DNA of 63,584 bases, counting the filler, from Syncephalis fuscata S228 (taxonomy: Eukaryota; Fungi; Zoopagomycota): assembly GCA_025786725.1 (NCBI GenBank). It is 3 parts of 3 records of this genome, joined end to end, with 100 filler letters (N's around TTAATTAATTAA, not from the genome) between each part and the next. Parts side by side here need not be neighbours in the genome. Positions count along the whole stretch, not along the records: positions 1 to 24,566 come from JAHLTZ010000127.1; 2 more parts are not named here. One strand, 5' to 3'. The translations under genes and the position numbers were made by a program. Positions 1 through 24,566 of the stretch are shown here, one piece after another. Under the pieces are notes generated by a model that was not told the DNA's origin, made no database searches, and saw only the letters and a program-made list of their open reading frames with translations. Every line of letters starts with the position of its first letter. Within the stretch, counting starts at the first letter, position 1.

Positions 1-575
1 AATGCTATTACCATCTAGCCTTGGGTCTTTATAAATTAACTTTTTATCACATTACCAATTATGGTAATAGCAATTAATGGTGATTGCAGTATCACATGAT
101 TTATTTACACCTGGTATTCTTCACTTGCATTTTACGAAACAACAAACGGCACAGAACCTAGTTTAAATCCACTTTCCAGTGATCACCTGATCACCTAATA
201 GTACTACAAACATCTTAGCCTTTTTAAAGAATTTACAATTTTAATCAGGTATGTAACACAATATTAAAATAGTTTCAATTAACAATTATAATGTCTATAA
301 TTTGTTTTGTTATTTGATTAAACAAAATTAAAATGAAACCAAATGTTTATTGCTAGAATTTGGACAACTGAATGAAAAACAGCTAAATTCAGATTTGTAG
401 TAATATAATGGCATCATTAATTATAAGTTGAGTAAACCGGTGCATTGATCGGTAGTTGATATGCGAATGAACTAGACGGCAACTACTTAGAGGTCTTGCC
501 GCCCCAAATGTATATCTAAATGTATAGATTGATAATTCAGTCGTACTATCAATAGCAATGCCTTCGATAAGCCGG

Positions 576-2852
576 TTAATCTATGTTCATAAATTTATAC
601 AGCAAATTTCATGTAGTTAGTGTTTAAATCAACAATATATAAAATTATTTACCAACTATTAGTGCAAGTTATTAAACACACGCAGTGCATAAAGTGTAAT
701 TAGTTTATAACTATTTAATATACAATGGCACTTACACCCTATCAACACAAGTTATTACACAAGAGCAGTACATAACATATGCTTAGTGTATCGATAATTT
801 ATATAAAATGCCACTTACGGACTATTAATGTTGTTATTGAATACATACAGTGTATATCACATGGTCAGTATATATTTGGTTAGTACAAAGTTTCACCTAC
901 AAGCTACCAAATACACGCAGTACATAGAACATGTTTAATATACAGTTGAGTAATATACTATGTCACTTACGACCTATTGATAGCCGTTATTAAAAATGTA
1001 ATCCATGCCGCATAATTAATATATAGCTGGTTAATATACAATGTCACTTACGTTCTATTAATACAAGCCATTAAACATACACATTGCATGGTATATATTT
1101 AGCGTATATTTGCCTAATATATAGAGTTATTTACCAGCTATTAATATAAGTCGTTAAACAGATAGATTGTGTGACATGTTTAACACATAACTAACTAAAA
1201 CATAATTTCATTTACCAGCTATTGATATAAGTTATTACACACACGTAGTGGATGATATATGCTTAGTAAATAGTTAATTAATATAAAATGTTATCTACCT
1301 TCTATTGGTGCAGGTTATCCACATCAAATAATTTATGATTAGCGTATAAATAATTACTATACAATGTCCCTTACTAGCTATTAATACAGATTATTACACA
1401 AATGTGCATGTCATATACTTAGTAAATTATCAATTAACATACAATGTCATTTACCAGTTGTTACTTCAAGATATTAAGCAATCACAGTACATAGCATAGG
1501 CTTAGTTTTTAGTCGATTAATAAACAATGCCATTTACCAGCTATCGATATAGGTTATCAAGCAGACGTAGTGCATATCATATATTTAGTGAATGAACGAT
1601 TAATATACAGTATCACGGGGGGACGTTGCTAGCCCAGTTGGTAAGGCAGCGTCTCCCGAGCTGAAGGCTCCGGGTTCAAACCTCAGTTTGAATCAATCCT
1701 TAAGTGGAAAATCCCCCCCTCCAGTTTTCTCTAGTTAACAAATTGCAAACCAGAACCCAATAAGTAGGTCCGGAAACAAGACCTTGGCCAGAATAGCCGA
1801 GGAAAACCAATTGGGACCAACTTCAAGAGAATAGTGCTGTGTAGCACCATTTAAAGGAAGATGGCCCCCGTGTAAAATCTATATGGACCAGATTTTGCGC
1901 AAAAACGTGGCAGTCCACCCGTTAAAAGTTTGGAAAAGTCCAAATATAGTGGGAAGCAGCGCAAATTCTTTAATTATGCGCAGCGGGGGCTCACAAGCTC
2001 TTCAAAATAAAATAAAATAATATACAGTATCACTTACGTTCTATCAATAAAAATTATTATACAGATGAAATACCCGACATATGTTAGTACATAAATAGCT
2101 AATTTGCAATTCCACTTACTTCCTATTGATACAAGGGATTACACATCATATGGTGCATGCTTAATGTATAAATAATTAACATACAGTATTACTTACCCCC
2201 TAGCAATACAATTTATCATACAAGCATAGTATACAATCTATATTCAGTGCGTAGCTATTTAATATATAATGCCATTTACCAACTATTAATATAAGCATTG
2301 CATAAACGTAGTACATAGCATATGCTTAGCATATAGTTAATTAATATGCAGCGTCATTTACCAACTATTGATACATGATATTAAACAACCACAGGGCATG
2401 ATATTTTAGTATAATCGATTAATATAGCATTTTACTTACAGGCTATTAATGTACGTTATTAAACAAATATGGTACATGTTATATGCTTAGCGTATAGCCA
2501 ATAAATACACGACGTCACTTACTAACTATTGATACAGGTTAGTATACAGGCATGCATGCCACATACTTAGTGTATAGTCAATTAATACATAATTTCATTT
2601 ACTTTCTATTAATACAAGTTATTAAACATAAAAATTATATGGTGTATGTTTAGCATATAATAACTAATATATAATGACGCTTACGATCTATTAACGTGGT
2701 TTTTCAGTGTATACATTATTTAATTAAGTGAATGACTGATTATTGTAATACGACATACCACGACGGCCTAGAGTCGGCATGGCATCCACCGTAGCTGTGA
2801 TAACTACCAAGGCCATAAAAATGGTACATACGACGCCAATAGAAAACTTCAT
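576..2852 (-). CDS. Secreted peptide precursor encoded by an array of 3-nt microexons (copy 1)
   Basis: Exon 1 is 2852-2759 (94 nt, MKFSIGVVCTIFMALVVITATVDAMPTLGRR+G, donor gtatgt). The 3-nt exons (lowest coordinate given) are flanked by tag and gta: 2685 ATC, 2603 AAA, 2523 TTA, 2440 CCT, 2362 TTG, 2280 TTG, 2197 GGG, 2120 GAA, 2038 AAC, 1538 CTG, [1455 CTG, acceptor caa], 1375 CTA, 1299 AAG, 1216 CTG, 1135 CTG, 1052 AAC, 971 GTC, 901 CTT, 819 TCC, 736 GGT, 653 TTG. The last exon is 580-576 AT+TAA. The spliced frame is open and ends ...RR DQITFVGGKPA(A)KAAERPFRFD*. Confidence 0.85.
581..2758 (-). repeat. Degenerate tandem array of ~80-bp units (intron + 3-nt exon)
   Basis: The plus-strand motif 'ttaatatacaatgtcacttac NNN ctattaatacaagttattaaac' recurs about every 70-83 bp, interrupted once by the SINE. 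Confidence 0.9.
1617..2017 (+). mobile_element. tRNA-derived SINE inserted in a microexon-array intron
   Basis: Perfect 16-bp TSD taatatacagtatcac (1601-1616 and 2018-2033). The 5' end is tRNA-like, with A box TAGCCCAGTTGG and B box GGTTCAAACC, and the 3' tail is (AAAAT)n. It is GC-richer than its flanks. Removing it with one TSD restores an 80-nt intron. Confidence 0.88.
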
Positions 2853-4556
2853 GCTGGTATTGATTTGTTAAAATAAACAAGTAGAATGAACAATGCAAAA
2901 TGCTAGGAATAAAATGAACAATGCAATGGTTTTGCAAAAGTAGAATGCGATGATGCTATCACTGGGTAGTTGTGTGTATTTTGTGGGCTATTTAAATATA
3001 CGTCTGTCCTAGAGAATTAGAAAATGTATTCTATCGCCTATACCCTTGAGGTGCAATGTGGCCAATAAAGTGAATTCACATAATAGCTAGAAGCGCGCGT
3101 ACAACAATATACCAATGACGTAGCAGTATGCAATCTAGCTCTTTATTCTAAACATGTTTGGCAATTACACAAGTGATTCAACAATATAAATGATTTAACA
3201 CATATGTTGTAAAATATGTTATCGACTGTTCTTGCGCGGTTACACAATTCAGCAATGGCGCGCAAGCTCAATCTACTAGTTTTCCAAAACAAAAACAATA
3301 AACTGTTGCGTCTTTGATGTTGCCTTTGGTGTTATTTTCGCCGACAAATTCAGTTTCTAATATATTTATGAACATTGAAAAACACGGCTGCAATTCACTG
3401 GCACAAATAACATAATAAGATTGTATTTATTTACAATTCTTTAAACCACAAAAATGCACTGATCAGTTTTTCATGAATTATCTTGACATTTAATATTTGA
3501 TTATGAAATGAACGGTTTATTTTTAGTATTGTACTACCAAATACTGCTAAAGGCTTTATCGCCAACAATTGATTGTTTTTATCAATTATTCATCGTTGTG
3601 TAATGCCATTCTAATAATAAAACACTAGATTCGAGTATCAACGTCATCGATTCTTTGTTTATAAAGTGATGTAAAGGCAATAGAAAGCACCCACTAGGCC
3701 ATCCTAGTTAAATATAGCTGATTTTGGGTGTACAACAGTAATATACGACATATCAATTGGCGACAATGATGTAAAAATAGTTTACTTGATAGTAACTTGA
3801 TGGGAATAACCTGTTTTATTATGATTGTCATGGTTTGCAATAAGTGGACGTAGCAAATTGCATTGTTTTGAGTTTGACTAAAAGTTTGACTAGTCAACGG
3901 CTTTTAAAGGTATACGGCATTTTTATATTTAGAATACATAACTAATATACGCTTTATATAAATATAAACATAATTGCACACACATTTATTTAATCATTAG
4001 TATTCTCATTAGTGTTGCTTTATTGTTATTAATTTGCAATTTTGCAAGAACATATTTAAAATCCAACTTTATCAAATGGTTCCGTTTCCATAATTTTGTT
4101 TTGGTTCAGTTTGCTTTGAATTTTAGCAATTTTTATCACTTGTAACTGTAATAAATATTTATAATTATGCATTCGGCAGATTACAGTAATTAAATTAAGT
4201 TTATATTTGCATAAATACACTTTTAATATACTTGCTTTATTGATGTTTTTTTAATTATTAGATGGTAATAAAATACGAAAGTAGATATAGCACACTAATT
4301 AAATATAATTGAAATGAAACCATATGTTTATTACTAAAGTTTGCACAGATGAATAGAGACGACTAATTCTGGCATATAGCAATATAATGGCGCCACTAGT
4401 TAAAGTTTAATAAACCGGAATATTGAATAAAACTTGATATAAGAATAGACTTGAATGGTAGTTGCTGGATGGTCTTGATTTTGCTAAATGTATACCTAAA
4501 GTTTATAGACTGGCAGCATGTTCACGTCACCAATGCCAGTGTTTTGGATGTGTCGA

Positions 4557-5189
4557 TTACACTATTTTCATAAGTTTATACAAAATGTAACATAGTTAGC
4601 GTATAAATCAATACTATGTAATTCTACTTACTAACTATAGATTGTTAAACACGCAGTGCGCAGTATGTTTAATGCATAGCTAATTGATATATACGTAACT
4701 TACCAGCTATTGATGGCAAATTATCGGGCACAATGCATATGTTAATTTATAGCCAATTGCTATACAATGGCACTTACGTACTATTAGTGTCAAATTATTG
4801 GACACACAATACATAGCATATGTTAATTTATAGTTAATTAATATACAATATCACTTACAAGCTATTAACATCAGGTAATCAAACACGCAGTACATAGCAT
4901 ATGTTAATACATAGTTAATCGATATACAATGACACTTACGCTCTATTGATGTGTGTTATGTATTACCCACAGTAAATTAAACATAAACGATACATTCTAT
5001 TAATATGTAGCATTACTTACGATCTGGTAACATCGGTTGGGTAATGCAAGCAGTATTTAATTAGCTAAGTAGTTAATTATTGTAATACAATATATTACCA
5101 CGAATTGGAGCCGGCTTAGCATCCACCATGGCTGTAGCGGCTATCAAAGCCACGACAATGGCACAGATGGCGGCAATAGAAAGCTTCAT
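4557..5189 (-). CDS. Secreted peptide precursor encoded by 3-nt microexons (copy 2)
   Basis: Exon 1 is 5189-5099 (91 nt, MKLSIAAICAIVVALIAATAMVDAKPAPIR+G). The 3-nt exons are 5021 ATC, 4940 AGC, 4859 CTT, 4778 TAC, 4704 CTG and 4632 TTA, all yAG|NNN|GTAAG. The last exon is 4561-4557 TG+TAA. The product ends ...R DQPLPVM*. Signal exon and flanks are homologous to copy 1. Confidence 0.85.
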
Positions 5190-6133: not shown

Positions 6134-8598
6134 TCAAGTTTTAATGGCTGTTGCCTCGATAGATGGATTACTGCCTTGTAAGATAATAAATACCAACACA
6201 AGTAGACATGTACCCGCTACATCGCCAATCGCTGTTCTAAATGTTGGACAAGTAAGTGCTCAGCTATCTAGCTGTATTATATCGAATCACTTACATGTAT
6301 GGCAGTGCATAATTATCCGGATCTAGACTCCTATGCCATAATGCAACGACAATCCATCGTGATGCGACTAACAGACCAGCAACCTATCACGTTGAATATA
6401 CATTGTCAATAATTGATAAAATACTATCAATGTCATTCATTCATTCATTAACTTACTAGTAGCATTGAGGCCAGTGTATATAGTAAAAACATGCCAACAG
6501 TAACACTACCATGACCAAGATTAAATGCCCGTACTATACCCAAGAATGGCCATTGGACGGGTAGGTTAAGTAGCCATAGCACGACACCAATAACCAGCTG
6601 CTTCTCTTGTCGTCGTGCATGTAATGCAGTGGATATACGTGAAGCAAATACACAACATAGATTACCTGATACGCCTAACAAATTACAAGTCAGTATTATA
6701 TAGTTAAAAGTATATAATAATACTATACCATTAAGTACAGGAACTAGAACTGCCATGCCGGCATATCGATCAATAAACCGTTCAAGTACTAGACCGGCCA
6801 GACTAATGATCATTATAATGATGCAATTGTTAATAAGCTAACGTATAATATATATATGGCTATTACCTTGAAATAGCCATGGCTAATAGAATGGGTACCC
6901 AACCATCGAACATCGTTTCTCTTATAAGTTCATTTTTGCGTATTAGCCAGAACCATACTGGTAATGAGAATAGCATAATAATAAAAGTACAGTAGGAAGT
7001 ATAGTATCTTTTTAATCAATTAGTAGCAAATCCTATATTAATACAAGTCAATCACACTTACCCATGACGGGGTAAAGCCAGCTGCTAATGATAGCCAATA
7101 CCGCTAGCGTAATTAAATCACCAAAACTCGCGGCAATTGGTGTAGCCACATTATCTGGATTAATGCCTCGTCGTCGGCAAGCGATACATAGGAAACACAT
7201 ACATAGACCAAGTAATGCACTACTTACTGCAGCACATATCATAGCCGATGTAATAATAAGCATTGCTTGGTGAAATGAGAATGGACTAGCTGTGCCACTA
7301 CTACCATGTGTAATGAACCCCATAATAACTGATAATAGACCAGCCAAACACGAGACACTGAGTGCTTGTAGTTGTAGCAAGGCTAAATTGCCCCATACTA
7401 AAAGACGTTGTGATTTTGGCACATCCAAATCACCTAAATTTGCCTAATATTGATTATTCATTTACTAACGAGCTATTAATATTAATGAATACTTACGGCT
7501 GTTGACATTCTTGAGGCAAGATTCATTTCTAGATTGCCTTTAAGACCAAGTAACACGGGAACCATAATAAATAGCTGGGTAATATGCGTAAATACCGTCC
7601 AATGCTAATTATAGTTAATTAACGATTACCATAGAATATTTAATAAATATCGTTTATTGCTGATATACAACTTACCTGTACAACATCGAGTAACCAACCC
7701 GCCATGATAAGACCAACAACGGCAACTAACAATGATGGAAGCGTCTAATGGTTATCCATTTTATATTAATATTTGCAATAATGGCCATATCTACACATTC
7801 ACTTACCTGAAGTGCCACTACAAGTGGACTATCCTCAACCGGCCCATCTTCAGCATTAGTTCGACGGCCACCAAGCATACTTGTATCTGATGCGGCAAAA
7901 CTAAACTTTCGTCTAAAGTGTCCAGCCACATCTTCAAGTAGAATAGTGGAAAAAGACGCGCCTCGATCACGTAATCTTTTACGACTCATATGTAGCCACG
8001 CATCTCCATCCTCCTCGTCGTCATCCTCATTCTCTTCCTCTATTATATCCTCGCCACGGCCTCGTAATCCATGTTGACCTTTTCGTGGCTGTATCGGTGT
8101 CAATGGAACATCTTGCCCATCCAATTCAATAGCTGTATCCAATCGACTCACATTGGCTGCTACACGTCGATCATTTAAATCCATCGTATCACTACTATTT
8201 TCACTCTGCAATAATCTATAAGGCCCACGAGATGGCCCTGTTCGATGCGGCCCTGTCACCGAGTCGTGCAACACTACTGTTTCCTCATCTTCACTATCAG
8301 GTGTTTCATGAAGTGTATGATTGCCTAGATTCGTATAGCCTGTATTCGGCCTATTTAACGAAGGTTCACTGAAGGTAAGATGGCGACCTAGTAAATTGCC
8401 ATCGAGTCGAATAGCTTCTGTAGACGCGGCTTCGCTATTATTAGCCGCTGTTGTCGCGACTGCTCTGTCATGACCACGCTCGTCACTATGACTTGCTTCA
8501 TAGGTAAATGGACGTGTAGGTGTTCGTGGTTCTGAAGAAGCGTCAGACGGTGACGGCAATGTTATTATTGGTAGCCGTGATAATTCTGGTTCAGTCAT
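6134..8598 (-). CDS. SLC41/MgtE-family magnesium transporter (multi-exon)
   Basis: MgtE-repeat motifs: [63 protein letters not shown] and [19 protein letters not shown]. Long disordered N-terminus. Confidence 0.9.
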
Positions 8599-9737: not shown

Positions 9738-12700
9738 TTAACATGAACTTCTTTTAACAAATCGACACTTGACCAATGTTCTACAAAGCACCCAATCTAT
9801 ATATATATATATGTATATGTATATTGTTAGTGCCATTATTCTATTCAATAAATACAACACTTACCGGTCACGTAATAATTCAACTTCATCTAATAGAATT
9901 TGTGATCGAAGTCTTGATTCCCGTCGAGAAGAGGACTGGTTCAGGTCGGGATAGTTGCCAGGAGGCATGGCGGTGAACGGATTATGGTAGGCAAATGGAG
10001 AAGTCTCCGTACCGGTGTCCTCTTCAATACGGTTGGCCAAATCAATCAAATCTAATAGACGTACTTGTTGAGGTTGGTGTAGTATTTCCTATAATAACAC
10101 AGTGTTAATTAGTTGAATAGTAATTATAATGTACACTTACTTCAAACTCTTCTTCTGTACGCAGATTAAGTAATGTGTCACGACACCCAATAAGTAGAGC
10201 TACGGCAAAGAAGTAAATAAAGGAGGGTGGTCGTGTAAAGCAATGATCCCATAGACGGGCCCAATCTTCTTTACAAAGTACTTCTGAAAAGAGTGATTGT
10301 AATGGAATCCATCCGTAAATCTATTAATATTAATGTTTATAAATATAATAAGCATAGTATTGGTTATCTATCTACTCACCTCATTAGGAATGACATGAGA
10401 CCGGAAGTGCTCAAGTAGTTCAAGGTCATGCTCCGATAGTAATTCATCCAATTTCTCCAAGAATAGCTTAGGGGCAGACGGGAATTGATTCCACCAGCCT
10501 TGGCACCAATTACCTAAGTATAAAATAAATTGATTAATAAACTAATAGTAAATACTATTAAATATAAATATATACGTACTTAATAGTGTAGCTACAAGCT
10601 CAAAGCAAGCAAACAAATCATCGCCCATCATCTTCACAAAGGGGAAGACTAAATAGGGCATATAGTCGAGTTCTTCAAATGCTGGATTCCAATGTACTAG
10701 CAATGATATCATACTATTGTAATGTTAATTAGTAATTAGTAATTGGTAATAATTACTATTATATTATGCTTACCGTTCCATGGCCAGTTGCAATTTACGG
10801 TTCTGCATAGAAAATCGTTCACGGAATCGATCAATACATGAATGTGTACCTTGTGATACCAAATCACGAAATGCATCTATTATTATTATTATTATTATTC
10901 ATTATTCATTATAAATAATGACATCAATATTCATTTAGATTAATAGCTTATTATAGTGTTTACCTTGGTTCTGAGGCAGTACAAGTAAGAATCGCCAGAT
11001 AAGTGTACGATAATCACGTGGAAAACGACCACGCTTCTCTAGAATCTCTACTAAACTCTTTCGATTCATTTCTGGATTGCCATTATGGGTCAGGTCAATA
11101 TCCGAGTCAAGTACCGATCGGTTGGCTTCACTGGATGCATCAGTTGGCGTAGGCGATGCATTAAGATATTCACGATACTGAATATTTGAACGTGAACCGG
11201 AGTTACCAGAACGTGATGGTCCTGGTGCATCCGACATACGACGGTTCGAGTAAGTATCGCGTATCGATTGAGGACGGGCACCCGAAAGACTATTACGAGA
11301 CCTTGTGGAGTTGGCCGTATTCGATAGATTGCGTGGAATCGACGGGGGACCACTAAGACGATTGGGACGATTACCAGACGCTGAGGACACTGAATTACTA
11401 CGAACTGGCATAGGAATACGTGATGCTGATGCACCCGATAAACGACGGTCCTCTTGACGGTTTCGTGTTGGTGTAGCAGCACCACTACGAATACTAGTAG
11501 CGGGTGAAGATGCACCGGAAACTCGACGAGAATGGGTTACTGACATATTTGCATAATCATCTTCAGAGGGCGACTAATAGTGTGTGTGTGTGTGTTTATG
11601 GATCATTCATTAATAAATATAGTGTATACACCTTTATATTCTAAATCACTTACTGGCGCACGTAGTAACGTTTCAACTGACCAAAGTGTGATAAATGATG
11701 GCGAATTGATCGGCAGTGTTGATAGAATTAAGCCATCTGATGAAATGGTAAAATTCTTGGCCTAATTAATCATTTAAATGATTGTTGTTATATTGATATT
11801 TAATAAACTATAAACTATAAACTATAGATTTACTTACTGGCTTAAGACCAACACCTTTGGAAAAGTTTGATATCGCATCAAAAATAATAATGCGGCCTTG
11901 AGCATTAAGTACAACAAGCAATGTAGTTCGCGCGGCAAACTCCATTTGTACAATGCCTGTCTGTAGTCGTTCATCAATAATCTCTCTCTGTAGACGCTGC
12001 TCTTCAACGTTCCATACATGAATAATACCCCTGTAGATCCATGTTACCTACAATATATGCATGCTAATCAATTCAACTTACCAGCCCCCTGTGACCATCA
12101 ATTTACCATCACTTGATAGAGAAAATGAACTTAAACCACCAACAACATCATCATCTAATCCGACTAAATCATCTGGTGTAATCTTCCAGATCTGATCAAG
12201 TGTTTCAGAGTCCCATAGTACAATTGAATCATCGCGGAAATTAGCTACAATCATATCGCCAGATGGAGAGAATTCAGTTTGATTGACGCCCACTGCATCT
12301 ACACCTGTAAGTACATGTCGACGTGACCAATCCAACGTATCCCATAGAACAGATTCTGAGGCTGATGAAGTCAAAACACGAGGACGTGAGGGATGAACAC
12401 TAATACGTGTTACAATATTCTCGTGATGAGAAGTAAGTTTAGCCACTGGTGCGCCCGTGTCTATTCAATAATGTTAAGTAAATAGTTATATAATTAATAA
12501 AAGTATTTGTTATTTATATTTCTAAAGATAACATAAACAACAACTATGTTGTACTTACCCATATTGTAACAGTGAACAGCACGATCCGATAGACCCACAA
12601 TAAGCTCATTGGGTTTGGCAACACCCAGGGCCACAGCTGTACCAGAGATACCTGTACGTGCAATCAACCAGTATTTGTTGGCCTCAAGGTCAAACAAATA

Positions 12701-13075
12701 GATATGGCCTCGTTGATCCACAGCACTCATCAGTGCCGAAGAAGTAGCTGCGCCCTGAGCCATACTGCCGCCTATCGGTGTTGTAAAACGCGCCCGACGA
12801 CCATGATCACGTCGGAAACCAACACAGCCCCACTGAACACCGCCTGTGACCTTGTCACCTTTCTTAGCGGGACGGTTAGCGTTAACAAAGGCCAGACGCG
12901 CGGTGACTCTATATTGAAGCACAGTCTAGTTAGATGTCATCGCAACTGCAAATACTCGTGGAATCTATACTGACTTTTCGCTAGGAGGGGCGGCAAATGG
13001 ATCATCTCTATTCTCCCATAAACTACCTGAACGCGATTCCGCCACATAAACACAGGCTGATGAAGTAACAGACAT
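9738..13075 (-). CDS. TBC1D31: WD40 + TBC domain protein, TBC1D31/WDR67 homolog (multi-exon; 3' end uncertain)
   Basis: N-terminal WD40 segment DQRGHIYLFDLEANKYWLIARTG...ELIVGLSDRAVHCY and TBC start RKSLVEILEKRGRFPRDYRTLIWRFLLVLPQN, then LDYMPYLVFPFVK and NWCQGWWNQFP. This matches my recollection of the TBC1D31 architecture. Confidence 0.8.
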
Positions 13076-18053: not shown

Positions 18054-19958
18054 ATGTTTATTAATTTCAATTCAATTATATTGCTTGTGGTTTGTTCCAC
18101 TTTACCAATCTTTCTTTATTCGTTCAAGCATCCATCACTCTTCAGCATAATAATTTACTTATTCTACTTTTGATGTATTTGGTGCAGCAGTGGAGTTTTA
18201 CATATCACGGGTGTGTTAATGGCACCACAGTTTTCCCAAAATTCGTCCTGTCGTCTAATCACTACTAATTCTACCAATACCACTGCTGTATCATCCCCAC
18301 ATCAGAAAATGCAACCTCTACCATTCTATTGGTATCAAGCAGTCTTTCTAAAAATGCTGGTTGTGCATCATTAAACGATGTAAGTAACTGCTGCGCAACA
18401 AGTACATTGTAATTAACCTATTATTATTACTATTATTATTATTATTACTATTATTATTATTATTATTAGGTGTATGAAGAAGCACTAGCTTATAATCGAC
18501 GACTTGTATTAAATGGAGGATTGCCCATTAGCTCCGTCATTTATTCATTTGTAACACTTACAAGTAATACATTAACTGGACCTTTTAGTCCGTTGTATAT
18601 TTCAAATCAATTTTCATTACCTGGCTCGTTTGGTATACCTTTCATTCTATTACCGCAGCATGATAATGATCAAGTGCATGCCTTAATACAATCAACACCA
18701 GTAGTGGCCACATTAAAACAAGGTAAATTGACGTTATTAGACTTGTTATACTATAAGTAATATTAATATTAATATACTAATTAGAACGTGGGCCCTGGAA
18801 TGATGTTATTCTTTCGCCTGCCTATCGCGCATTTATTTGGTTTATGTTTTCTGTCAATTTATTCCTTATTCTTCGTACATTGGCCATTCTATTCTTTTGG
18901 CTAAATCGAAAAAATTGGAGATGGAACTTCGAACTGTAGTCGTAATCATTGCCCTAGTTTCAACTATAAGTAAGTTAACATTTATTTACTGATTTACATG
19001 GTACTTACCTCGATGATATAGTTTTTACTAGTCAATTTCCATTGAATTGTATAACTTTTGAAGCGCAAATTATCGGCCAATTCAGCTATATTTTGTCATT
19101 TATTGCTATTTATATGCTACTATTATCATGGTAAGCTATTGGTTAAATGGCTGTAAAACACAGTGTTAATATTATTATTACAGGGAATCAGTCCAGACGG
19201 CTATGCGAATTGAACGCCCAGTTACAATCATGCGCGTTATCATTTATAGCTGTTTAGTGCTACATATATTTTCCTATTCAGCTCATTTATTCGGTAAAAT
19301 GTATTTCATTTCTTATTATGAATCATCGTTCAGCTATGTAGTATCGTATTCAACATTATACTTTCTAGCGCCAGTGCTTTTAACTTTTTATACTATGGTA
19401 AGCTTTCATGTTTACACTAATTACCATCATACTAATTCGTCTCTAGGCTTCTTTTTTGTCAGAAAACAAGATGATTATCAAATTAGTTTAGTAACTTGTG
19501 AAGTAATGAGTCGGGTAAGTTGAATGGCAATTAATAGTCAAAATCGATGGGCTAATATGTCCCAAATTATTTAGATGAGCTACATTTCGTTCTCTTGTTT
19601 CATAAGCTATTTTATTCTTGCTGCCTCTAATATAATGGTGAAAATACCATTTGTCAGGGATAACATTGCCGCCAGTATTACATGCCTTGTACTTTTCTAT
19701 TTGGCCAATACGATTCGTTCGTTCGTACTGCTATTTACCCTCGGCATGCGCATATCCCCTGAATCCGTACCTGCCAATTTGGTCAACTGCATGGACGTGT
19801 ACAACCTTTGGGTGCAGCTCCGAAACAATGTTTGTCAGGTGGAAGACAAAGCTGGCACAAAAAAGTGGGACAGTAACAGTAATCGAGTTATGTCGCAATC
19901 CTCTTACACGTCCGATTCGCAATCTAGCGAATACGACATTGCCTATAATTTTTCATAG
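18054..19958 (+). CDS. Ectodomain + multi-pass (7TM-like) receptor-like protein, paralog A (5' part has indels)
   Basis: Hydrophobic N-terminus and Cys-containing ectodomain. VVATLKQE-RGPWNDVILSPAYRAFIWFMF precedes several hydrophobic exons. Confidence 0.6.
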
Positions 19959-20406
19959 TCATTGGCACTCAACAATAATCAGTAATTTAATGAAAATCAA
20001 AAGGCTTTTGTCAATTAATGCCTGTATTAATTTATTCCACACAATAATAATAGTAATAATAAAACAGCTTTGATCATCACATATCACATTTATTACCATA
20101 CATACAGATCACGATATGACAGCAACGTTCAAGTAAGGGGAAGCTAGTGTTGACAATGCCTTGTAACTGGTTTCCCACCTCAATGGGTCGACTATTATGG
20201 AAGGTATGTCACGCATGATTAAACTTGTTTATGCATGTGCCAGCCCATATATGCATATTTTACCATAAGGCTCATAATGTACCAGCATTACATCTTCCTT
20301 ATAAAGTTGATCACTTGTCCCTTGGACTCTAATATTCGCATATTCAACCATTAATCAGTTTTTAATTTATTTTTTGTATACGCTAGTCGGTTTTTGCATA
20401 TTAAAA

Positions 20407-21346
20407 ATGGAGATCCGTGACCCCACGGGTGCTCTAAATGTATTCGAATATTTATCAATGATGTCTGACGATGAAGCTACAGTTCGTCAGCGATACACAA
20501 GCCTTAATCGTGAGCTGTTCTGCTTTTCAATTATGCTTGTCATTTTTGTGCGTAATAGCTATTATGCAGGTAAAATAACTTTTCAGTATTCGAATAAACT
20601 TGCACCATGGTGTTGTAGCTTTATGAACTGTACCGGCCTCTTGGCTCATACAGTATTTACACTACCTTCATGGTTCCCTATTGGACCATCTTGCTACACA
20701 ATGTTATCGACATCCATCATTCTAATGGTATTGGCAACCATAGCGGCCAACACCATACTCTTGGAGCGTGCCTATATTGCTTATAGTCGCAATCGATGGC
20801 TTCTTGCACTGGGTATAATTACCATCGCTTTTCCCGGCCCTATATTCATATATATCACACGCTATTTTGCCATTGTCAAGATAAATGACAAATATGGCTG
20901 CTATCTTGACTATAAGTTTTACGTTCCTTATTTTCGTCTTTGTGTCGATCTTCCCGCCAATATTATTTTCTCAATTGCCTCCTGTCTCGCCATTTACCGC
21001 GAATACCAACGACGTCACGAAGATTGCTGGAAGAAGCTGGCCCGCAACGGTATTCTCACCATGTTACTTGTAGCATCTTCAAATATGCTGTGTTTTGCTT
21101 TACTTATTTCGCCTTCGCTTCGATTTTTGGGCGATCTTATGTTTTTCGCTGATTGGTAAGTGCTATAAAAGCGTATATTTAAAAAACACCAACGCTTTTG
21201 TAATAAGGACGATAGCAAGCGCACTACTTACAAAAAGTGTTGAAAACTTGCATTTTATTGCATCAAACTCCTCATTACCAAGTACCAAGCCCAAATCAAA
21301 TTACAAACAGAGCATCATTCAATTGAACATGTGCAGGGATCCGTGA
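20407..21346 (+). CDS. Orphan multi-pass (GPCR-like) membrane protein
   Basis: About 7 hydrophobic segments, a TM3-like ILLERAY motif, Cys in predicted extracellular loops (GPSC, YGC), and one intron near 21157. Confidence 0.6.
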
Positions 21347-23679: not shown

Positions 23680-24566
23680 TTATAGGATAAGTTTAATATG
23701 GTCATAATCAGTTAGTCTCTCGTTGAATACTGACAGTGGGGATTGCCAAATATCATAATCATTATCAAGAGTATGATCACCCAATGGGCGAAGTGCCAGT
23801 ACCGTTAAATAGTAACGGCCATTAGGTAAATCCGATACAGTGTGCCGATCATCGAGCGATTCAACATCACCAGTCCAGGGAAGGGCCAGTTCATAATTAT
23901 CGGGTGTGTCGTCATTACGGCTTAGTAATTCGCTAATACTATTAGGAACAATACCTAAAAGCTGTTTTGTTTCGGCCGAGTAAATACGAACAAAAGATAG
24001 GCGTGTTGCGTATTCAAGCCGAATGTAGACCCAAGGGAAATCGTAATTTTCATACTATAGGTGGCCGTTTCGTTAGGAAGGGCAATCTGCGTATTATCAT
24101 TTAAATTACGCAAGAATGGATAATTACTGGCCAGATTAAATACGTGAATATCACGGAGACGGCCCTTCATGCCTAAATAAGGCACATAGACGGCATCCTT
24201 ACTGCTCGTACTACTATGACAGCGCCACGATGAATTTGCCGTTGGATCGATCGATAAATAGCCAGAATAAACCCATCTTTCTGCTTCAGGGAGTGATCTT
24301 GGTGGTCGAATGGTTACGGTGATGTCACGTGACTCACCGGCTGGTATTTGAATTTCTTGAGTGGAGAAGGTCACAGCAGCGTAAATACGCTTTTGAAGTG
24401 GTGTAGCTGGGACCATTTGTGAGGCATTAAAGCTTTGTACCGATAGAGCAGGCTGGTGCCTTAAACGATAAGTTTTCGCCTCTTGATCGTTATTGAGAAT
24501 TGTAATAGTTTTTTGAATAGTTGAAGTAGCATCTGCCTGTTGTTGCGTATCATTAAGTGCGAGACG
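23680..24566 (-). CDS. C-terminal part (Fn3-like domain) of an S8 subtilisin-like protease, truncated by the gap
   Basis: RLALNDT...TYRLRHQPALSV...IPAGESRDITVTIRPP...VYSGYLSI...VPYLGMKG is typical of the Fn3-like region of fungal Vpr-type subtilases. There is a 1-nt indel near 24047. Confidence 0.75.

Follow-up and report, generated by a model that had tools for sequence, protein, structure and literature searches.

Arrays of three-base, phase-1 microexons in a large family of predicted secreted-peptide genes of Syncephalis fuscata

Introduction

Can a secreted peptide be assembled from a run of exons that are each only three bases long? The question is raised by a locus on the minus strand of a 63,584-nucleotide stretch of Syncephalis fuscata DNA (hereafter the window), where a signal-peptide exon is followed by an array of regularly spaced triplets bounded by splice-site motifs. 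The S. fuscata genome comprises 29.36 Mb in 371 contigs, and Syncephalis species are obligate mycoparasites of the Zoopagales (PMC6784888). The first-pass annotation read the locus as a microexon gene and compared it with the micro-exon genes (MEGs) of Schistosoma, 35 genes with 10–20 such exons each, mostly of about 15 nt (range 6–81, or 3–81 according to the abstract) and separated by introns of 0.1–5 kb (PMC10526429, PMC4350168), whose variants are made by alternative splicing and exon skipping (PMC4350168). The present analysis indicates, with a probability of roughly 0.88 that also covers the mechanism and function proposed, that the window holds real, transcribed members of a large S. 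fuscata family of secreted peptides with phase-1 microexon arrays; the gene structure as modelled is highly probable. An intron in nearly every codon across 20–37 consecutive codons, repeated in thousands of cases within one genome, brings exon-intron structure near its limit and offers a natural test bed for the spliceosome on runs of 3-nt exons, in respect of intron definition and removal order, and for intron multiplication by tandem duplication.

Structure of the two window genes

Gene 1 occupies positions 2852–576 of the minus strand and consists of exon 1, 21 units spaced at about 80 nt and a terminal exon (Table 1), the 94-nt first exon, the number of units, the AT+TAA end and the joined frame all agreeing with the earlier description. 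The motif AG-NNN-GTA is present in 20 of the 21 units, as had been claimed, the only departure from AG being unit 11, and the introns measure 67–80 nt with the exception of one of 497 nt that carries a SINE-like insert. The signal peptide of exon 1 was called by eye from the sequence. Joining the exons gives the frame DQITFVGGKPA(A)KAAERPFRFD*, while of the two alternative frames of the triplets one contains three stops and the other is open but out of frame with exon 1. The exons are thus three bases long as originally described; in contrast, the notion of one exon per residue does not hold, since the array lies in phase 1 and every codon straddles two exons. The three-base exons of gene 1 are predicted to be included in mRNA, and the peptide would probably be cleaved by Kex2 after RR and secreted. 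ORF listing and ARAGORN returned nothing at the gene 1 locus.

The AA that replaces the AG acceptor of unit 11 is also found in the other haplotype (L051). Retention of the unit gives KPAAKAA, skipping gives KPAKAA and a 9-nt exon gives KPVTTAKAA, the frame remaining open in all three cases; unit 11 is probably either skipped or spliced as the 9-nt exon, using an AG 6 nt upstream. The SINE-like insert is flanked by a 16-bp target-site duplication (1601–1616 and 2018–2033), ends in an AAAAT tail and contains tRNA-like A and B boxes, recognised by eye; RNA depth over it is very high and an Rfam search gave no match. The insert is not present in the other haplotype, and this polymorphism suggests recent retrotransposition. 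Inserts of 410–500 nt also occur in array introns of loci L033, L035, L059, L061 and L062, and integration may favour the recurring intron motif.

A second, similarly organised gene, overlooked at first pass together with the genome-wide family described below, lies at 5189–4557 on the minus strand and has six three-base exons. Gene 2 has a single R where gene 1 has RR, and its mature part reads DQPLPVM*. In two other copies of this gene a 65-nt deletion removes the exon at 4942, thereby taking away one exon and one residue. The peptides of both genes are free of cysteine, gene 1 being an atypical family member in this regard, and the two could represent linear effectors, signals or degenerate copies. 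A loose read end at 5116 in the RNA-like run may derive from a spliced paralog. Between the two genes a low-depth RNA contig lies at 3736–3913 (minus strand); it has no ORF, and three of its four variants agree with the C79 haplotype.

Table 1 Features of the two microexon-array genes of the window.
Feature	Positions	Strand	Details
Gene 1, 5' UTR and putative promoter block	2853..3060	-	common to family; TATA-like TTTAAATAG near 2996-2988
Gene 1, exon 1	2759..2852	-	94 nt; signal peptide, short pro-piece, dibasic RR (LGRR), +1 base (phase 1)
Gene 1, array of 21 three-base exons	653..2687	-	introns 67-80 nt, alike one another
Gene 1, exon starts, units 1-11	2687, 2605, 2525, 2442, 2364, 2282, 2199, 2122, 2040, 1540, (1457)	-	
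Gene 1, exon starts, units 12-21	1377, 1301, 1218, 1137, 1054, 973, 903, 821, 738, 655	-	
Gene 1, unit 11	1455..1463	-	triplet 1457-1455; acceptor AA in place of AG
Gene 1, SINE-like insert in intron 10	1617-2017	+	401 nt; 1601..2033 including target-site duplication
Gene 1, terminal coding piece AT+TAA	576..580	-	start of last exon
Gene 1, 3' UTR	340..575	-	homologous throughout family; AATAAA at 351-346; RNA contig over 410-580
Gene 2, exon 1	5099..5189	-	91 nt; signal peptide ending PIR, +1 base
Gene 2, array of six three-base exons	4632..5023	-	exons at 5023, 4942, 4861, 4780, 4706, 4634
Gene 2, terminal coding piece TG+TAA	4557..4561	-	

A genome-wide family of microexon arrays

A genome-wide scan for the unit motif, an experiment suggested at first pass, found the strict motif with a 3-nt core 2,752 times against five in the control, and pairs of adjacent 3-nt units 3,274 times against none, counts so far above control that the array of gene 1 cannot be ascribed to chance. 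The enrichment is specific to exon length, as motifs with a core of 2 nt (26 against 36) or 4 nt (15 against 20) stay at background and that with a core of 6 nt (149 against 43) is modestly enriched. Similarly, 565 of 568 exons identified in the fetched loci by a frame-blind caller, trained on strict units, are 3 nt long. The longest arrays contain about 37 phase-1 exons, which are 3 nt and occasionally 6 or 9 nt long.

A search with exon 1 of gene 1 identified paralogous exons at no fewer than 150 dispersed loci (150 scored among 271 candidates), with haplotype duplicates counted. Models cover 31 array loci and about seven intronless copies; the first exon ends in phase 1 at each of the 31 array loci, a phase that the triplets preserve, and RR is present in most members including gene 1. 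The conserved exon 1 would thus supply the signal peptide and usually the RR, while the mature peptide would be assembled from the microexons. A profile search of 1.8 billion proteins gave 15 matches, in which all nameable family members belong to S. fuscata and the only match from elsewhere is a marginal, unrelated leafhopper protein (E 9.5e-4). Metagenomes scanned with the protein and with the unit pattern gave no match, and a protein search with exon 1 and its intron read-through gave no candidate. Few members are found in public protein sets; the two that could be placed on fetched DNA are intronless and others appear mis-modelled.

Near-identical pairs of loci are common, among them C79:316346 and C79:346696 and others on C1, C2, C24 and C350, some being inverted on the same contig, and locus L023 has single-base gaps at sites where RNA shows substitutions. 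These two features indicate that the assembly probably mixes haplotypes and that locus counts are inflated. About 14 loci, including L011, L032, L036, L043 and L045, form a subgroup with at least 1.4 kb in common 5' of the ATG, compared with the family promoter of about 300 nt, and this longer block may be a cassette of larger extent, either mobile or duplicated. In L052, L054, L055, L061 and L024 a second KR falls within the array-coded part, where the pro-piece itself is spelled by microexons. Two annotated proteins, P0011 (KAI9599469.1) and P0017 (KAI9593866.1), combine the family signal peptide with long Cys-free tails; that of P0011 contains KR-separated, amphipathic-looking segments rich in Lys and His, like an antimicrobial-peptide precursor.

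Coding properties of the triplets

The coding character of the triplets is most apparent at their junctions. Not one of the 349 phase-1 junction codons, taken from adjacent pairs in near-non-redundant genes, is a stop, against 19.7 expected on shuffling, and none of 5,000 shuffles gave a count as low; phase-2 junction codons contain 24 stops against 26.8 expected. Joined models are stop-free in 29 of 31 cases, while shuffling the exon order leaves about 20 with stops. Cysteine is the residue most frequently spelled by the triplets, with a pronounced codon bias (34 TGC, 7 TGT), and the spacing C-x2/3-C-x3/4-C occurs in 11 of the 31 joined models, several of which are shortened by locus length, against 0.4 under shuffled exon order. 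Many of the sampled members are thus predicted to be cysteine-rich, joined paralogs often spelling a six-cysteine frame. Intronless copies possess the signal peptide, 3' UTR and six-Cys frame of the array members and align with the joined exons of array genes, L044 with L062 at a score of 78 (null maximum 44) and L069 with L059 at a score of 59 (null maximum 43). This homology provides sequence-based coding evidence that is independent of the RNA data.

An opposing explanation treats the arrays as minisatellite or introner-like repeats within one long intron or within dead genes, with peptides made from the intronless copies only. The units are indeed about 70% alike and AT-rich, and the few members in public protein sets include two placed ones that are intronless. 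In contrast, AG and GT are invariant around a freely varying triplet: among the 27 window units the information content of the three exon positions is low (0.05, 0.44 and 0.09 bits) and the A-G and G-T-A on either side scarcely vary, a pattern that fits splice sites around a coding triplet and not a satellite. Stops are absent in phase 1 only, the Cys frame is held in common, and introns are removed exactly in RNA. RNA joints, stop avoidance and joined-model homology already largely refute the repeat-DNA explanation, which is hardly credible. Stop avoidance and RNA junctions, together with the intronless paralogs, back the microexon structure proposed at first pass.

Splicing and exon order

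The RNA evidence consists of contigs from a single run that is presumed to be RNA and has GT-AG joints and very uneven depth. A 420-nt contig lacks exactly positions 4562–4631 and 4781–4858 of gene 2, both of which run from GT to AG on the minus strand. At joint 4561–4632 a 70-nt intron is gone, with 147 letters on the shorter side, and at joint 4780–4859 a 78-nt intron is gone, so that two 3-nt exons abut; here the short side has 27 letters and the joint was flagged 'between: not known'. The variants and the 65-nt gap of the contig agree with those of L023, a genomic copy in which both introns remain; thus the joints result from splicing, and deletions in DNA are ruled out as their origin. 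The two introns between the spliced joints are still present. With these retained, the contig resembles a precursor caught midway through splicing, with introns removed out of sequence, and it may be a mosaic of molecules. For gene 1, the match of one contig ends exactly at donor 2759 with 33 letters beyond it and that of another begins exactly at acceptor 580; the gene 1 contigs have a depth below 3 and carry variants absent from both assembled copies. Splicing of a full-length array was not seen among the contigs of the one RNA-like run.

Intron definition is established in fungal splicing and could operate here, as the introns are short. Each short intron would be removed singly, the tiny exon next to it still being lengthened by introns not yet excised, such that a 3-nt exon need never be recognised by itself. 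Removal would not follow a strict 5' to 3' order, and all exons would normally be retained in sequence.

Random skipping of real exons, by which each gene would generate many peptides as a MEG-like isoform library, is very unlikely. Any skip would keep the frame because all exons are symmetric, Schistosoma MEGs behave in this way (PMC4350168), and unit 11 of gene 1, having no AG, is probably skipped. However, stops are missing only from joins of adjacent exons, whereas joins that skip one exon contain 16 (13.3 expected) and those that skip two contain 20 (11.6 expected). With stops purged from adjacent joins only, the normal product is probably the full ordered string. The cysteine spacing also needs full ordered inclusion, and both RNA joints connect adjacent exons. 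The stop pattern and spacing point to ordered constitutive splicing rather than MEG-type skipping; the earlier analogy with MEGs thus survives for the signal peptide followed by many small symmetric exons but not for tolerated skipping, of which there is no sign.

Intron homology and unit turnover

Array introns are mostly 75–80 nt long, and their identity is 0.72 between neighbours, 0.69 between introns six or more units apart and 0.64 between genes, compared with 0.55 after shuffling. As judged by these values, the array introns are homologous repeats. Divergence between close paralogs amounts to 31% of sites in the triplets, compared with 10% in mid-intron and 4–8% in the signal exon, the contrast of 31% with 10% arising partly from the alignment of non-equivalent units. 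Positive selection on point mutations was rejected as the cause of this rapid change, since pN and pS of the triplets are equal (0.35 each) and changes accompany changes in the flanking intron. Flanks differ by 0.17 at changed triplets and by 0.025 at unchanged ones, changes are grouped in blocks, and 36 of 46 changed units are nearer a sister unit than their positional partner. These block changes and the affinity for sister units indicate that whole units are replaced, gained or lost; a single-unit indel of 83 nt distinguishes L037 from L063.

The unit of evolution would thus be an intron of about 80 nt plus its triplet, and unequal crossing-over or conversion among similar units could add, delete or replace one codon without a frameshift. 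Tentatively, and at somewhat less than even odds, this can be extended to a codon-cassette mode of diversification in which the peptides are strings of interchangeable 80-nt modules, single residues are swapped by intron recombination, some 3,000 exons of three bases undergo constitutive splicing and retrocopies fix successful variants.

Intronless members and their predicted fold

The intronless members are probably reverse-transcribed derivatives of array genes; one of them is identical to KAI9593079.1 of S. fuscata. On the tree they nest in a well-supported Cys-rich clade amid array genes and call for three changes, a single clade of intronless copies being compatible with the data (p-AU 0.07). 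In L044 and L026 the homology stops within the 5' UTR, a short A-run lies past the poly(A) signal and the copy is bounded by 14-bp repeats that match at all but two positions, and both thus resemble processed retrocopies. Both flanks are preserved in L032, as in-place conversion by cDNA would predict, and L045 shows a mixture of features. The intronless L069:5381-5701 (minus strand) has a frame that extends into the 3' UTR of its relatives, through a lost stop or a frameshift. L044 and L031 (G000 C212:181795-183939) are intronless copies arranged in tandem at a distance of about 1.25 kb, and a decayed remnant of exon 1 lies after each of them.

AlphaFold models the mature part of L044 as a two-helix hairpin (pLDDT 79). 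The small-peptide fold neighbours of the model are VBP-8, the Jug r 2 leader and Luffin P1 (TM 0.65–0.73), nigellin-1.1 (TM 0.54) and BWI-2c, none of the matches being significant (Foldseek E 4–10, VIA Z 5.5 or less). Searches of Pfam, PDB sequences and Atlas features assigned the intronless members to no family. The model suggests that many members may be disulphide-braced helical hairpins.

Comparison with known systems

Like MEGs, the S. fuscata genes have a parasite's secreted products, a conserved signal peptide, many small symmetric exons and fast evolution, and are missed by gene finders. In contrast to MEGs, their exons are nearly all 3 nt, with up to about 37 per gene, their introns are about 80 nt long and mutually homologous, the family has at least 150 loci with intronless copies among them, and skipping leaves no signature, as stops are not purged from skip joins. 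No homology to MEGs, which are restricted to flatworms, was found, all named family matches being from S. fuscata. The aphid bicycle genes form a large family of secreted Cys-motif effectors in which about 17 small internal exons almost all have the same phase (bioRxiv 10.1101/2021.09.24.461719) and, like those of S. fuscata, begin at codon position 2. Bicycle genes differ in being insect genes with CYC motifs and protein-sized products, and have not been described with one-codon exons or repeat-derived introns; no CYC frame was found in the joined models and no aphid match in the protein search.

Plant alpha-hairpinins and vicilin-buried peptides are helix-loop-helix peptides braced by Cys at i and i+4 (PMC7191063; PDB 2nb2, 6o3q, 9q1l, 6o3s, 2lqx), the alpha-hairpinin motif being CX3C-Xn-CX3C. 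The two-helix model of the intronless member, whose paralogs have a related six-Cys frame, is similar, with fold matches that are non-significant. The fungal family differs by usually having six cysteines instead of four and one peptide per precursor, and the window peptides have none; the likeness is most likely convergent. Fungal Kex2-processed repeat proteins (KEPs), which release small peptides, share the signal peptide followed by a dibasic site (PMC7329392, PMC6339444), which is RR in gene 1 and replaced by a single R in gene 2, cleavage being presumed, and some S. fuscata members have a further KR inside the array-coded part. In contrast to KEPs, the precursor lacks tandem repeats of a core peptide, the repetition sitting in the introns and not in the protein. 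Three-base exons can be spliced in fungi, as illustrated by 27 of them in 26 genes of Coprinopsis (10.1101/2024.05.10.593147) and by the isolated microexon of Trichoderma Xlr2 (PMC11121469), at about one per gene compared with thousands in arrays here. The S. fuscata family further shows a conserved signal exon, a hypervariable mature part set in a Cys frame and a bias among Cys codons. Conotoxin and nodule cysteine-rich (NCR) peptide families combine a conserved signal exon with a hypervariable, Cys-framed mature part and a biased Cys codon, the mature peptide being encoded in one exon.

A literature search of incomplete coverage found no account of the S. fuscata family, of fungal arrays in which introns interrupt almost all codons, or of introns that derive from repeats and serve as codon modules. 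We rate the family as a new, extreme variant of the microexon-effector design with an independent origin, outside MEG, bicycle and KEP membership, and there is a real chance that the codon-module mechanism merits its own category. After schistosome MEGs and aphid bicycle genes this is apparently an independent case of a parasite encoding secreted products in same-phase microexons, one in which diversity is apparently made in DNA and not by skipping, and it suggests a rescan of other early-diverging fungal genomes.

Possible functions of the peptides

The family is large, hypervariable, secreted and Cys-framed and belongs to an obligate parasite, and for these reasons we lean, with some reserve, towards diversified secreted effectors or antimicrobial peptides directed against host fungi, their bacteria or competitors. 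Alternatively, the same genes could encode signals or recognition tags for the fungus's own receptors, acting in mating, self/non-self recognition or host sensing. This is unlikely, although the signal peptide and dibasic site recall fungal signalling peptides matured by Kex2 (PMC6339444), some members, both window genes among them, are short and linear and putative receptor-like ORFs with multiple membrane spans lie in the same window, as the tandem repeats of one core peptide are absent. A family that is spread over no fewer than 150 divergent loci, built on a braced hairpin frame and provided with numerous basic residues is more typical of defence or effector peptides than of pheromones. 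It is improbable that the peptides serve structurally, in a spore coat, as adhesives or as surface-active agents. Such a role would accord with the summed contig depth of about 1.2e5 at exon 1 and the 5' UTR, a poor gauge of expression because paralogs are pooled, but the mature part is extremely divergent and shows neither the eight-Cys pattern of hydrophobins nor a Pfam match. The arrays conceal a large family of predicted secreted peptides in an obligate mycoparasite, for which little is known of the molecules that act on its hosts, and such peptides may give antifungal leads.

Neighbouring features of the window

An MgtE-type cation transporter is encoded at 6448–8598 (minus strand) and a WD40/TBC protein, which clusters with Thamnocephalis TBC1D31, at 10935–12922 (minus strand). 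The segment at 23955–24416 (minus strand) encodes part of what is probably a subtilase, including an fn3_5 domain. On the plus strand, 18470–21346 contains several hydrophobic ORF pieces with multiple membrane spans and only a weak TMEM128 match, possibly representing tandem lineage-specific receptor-like genes.
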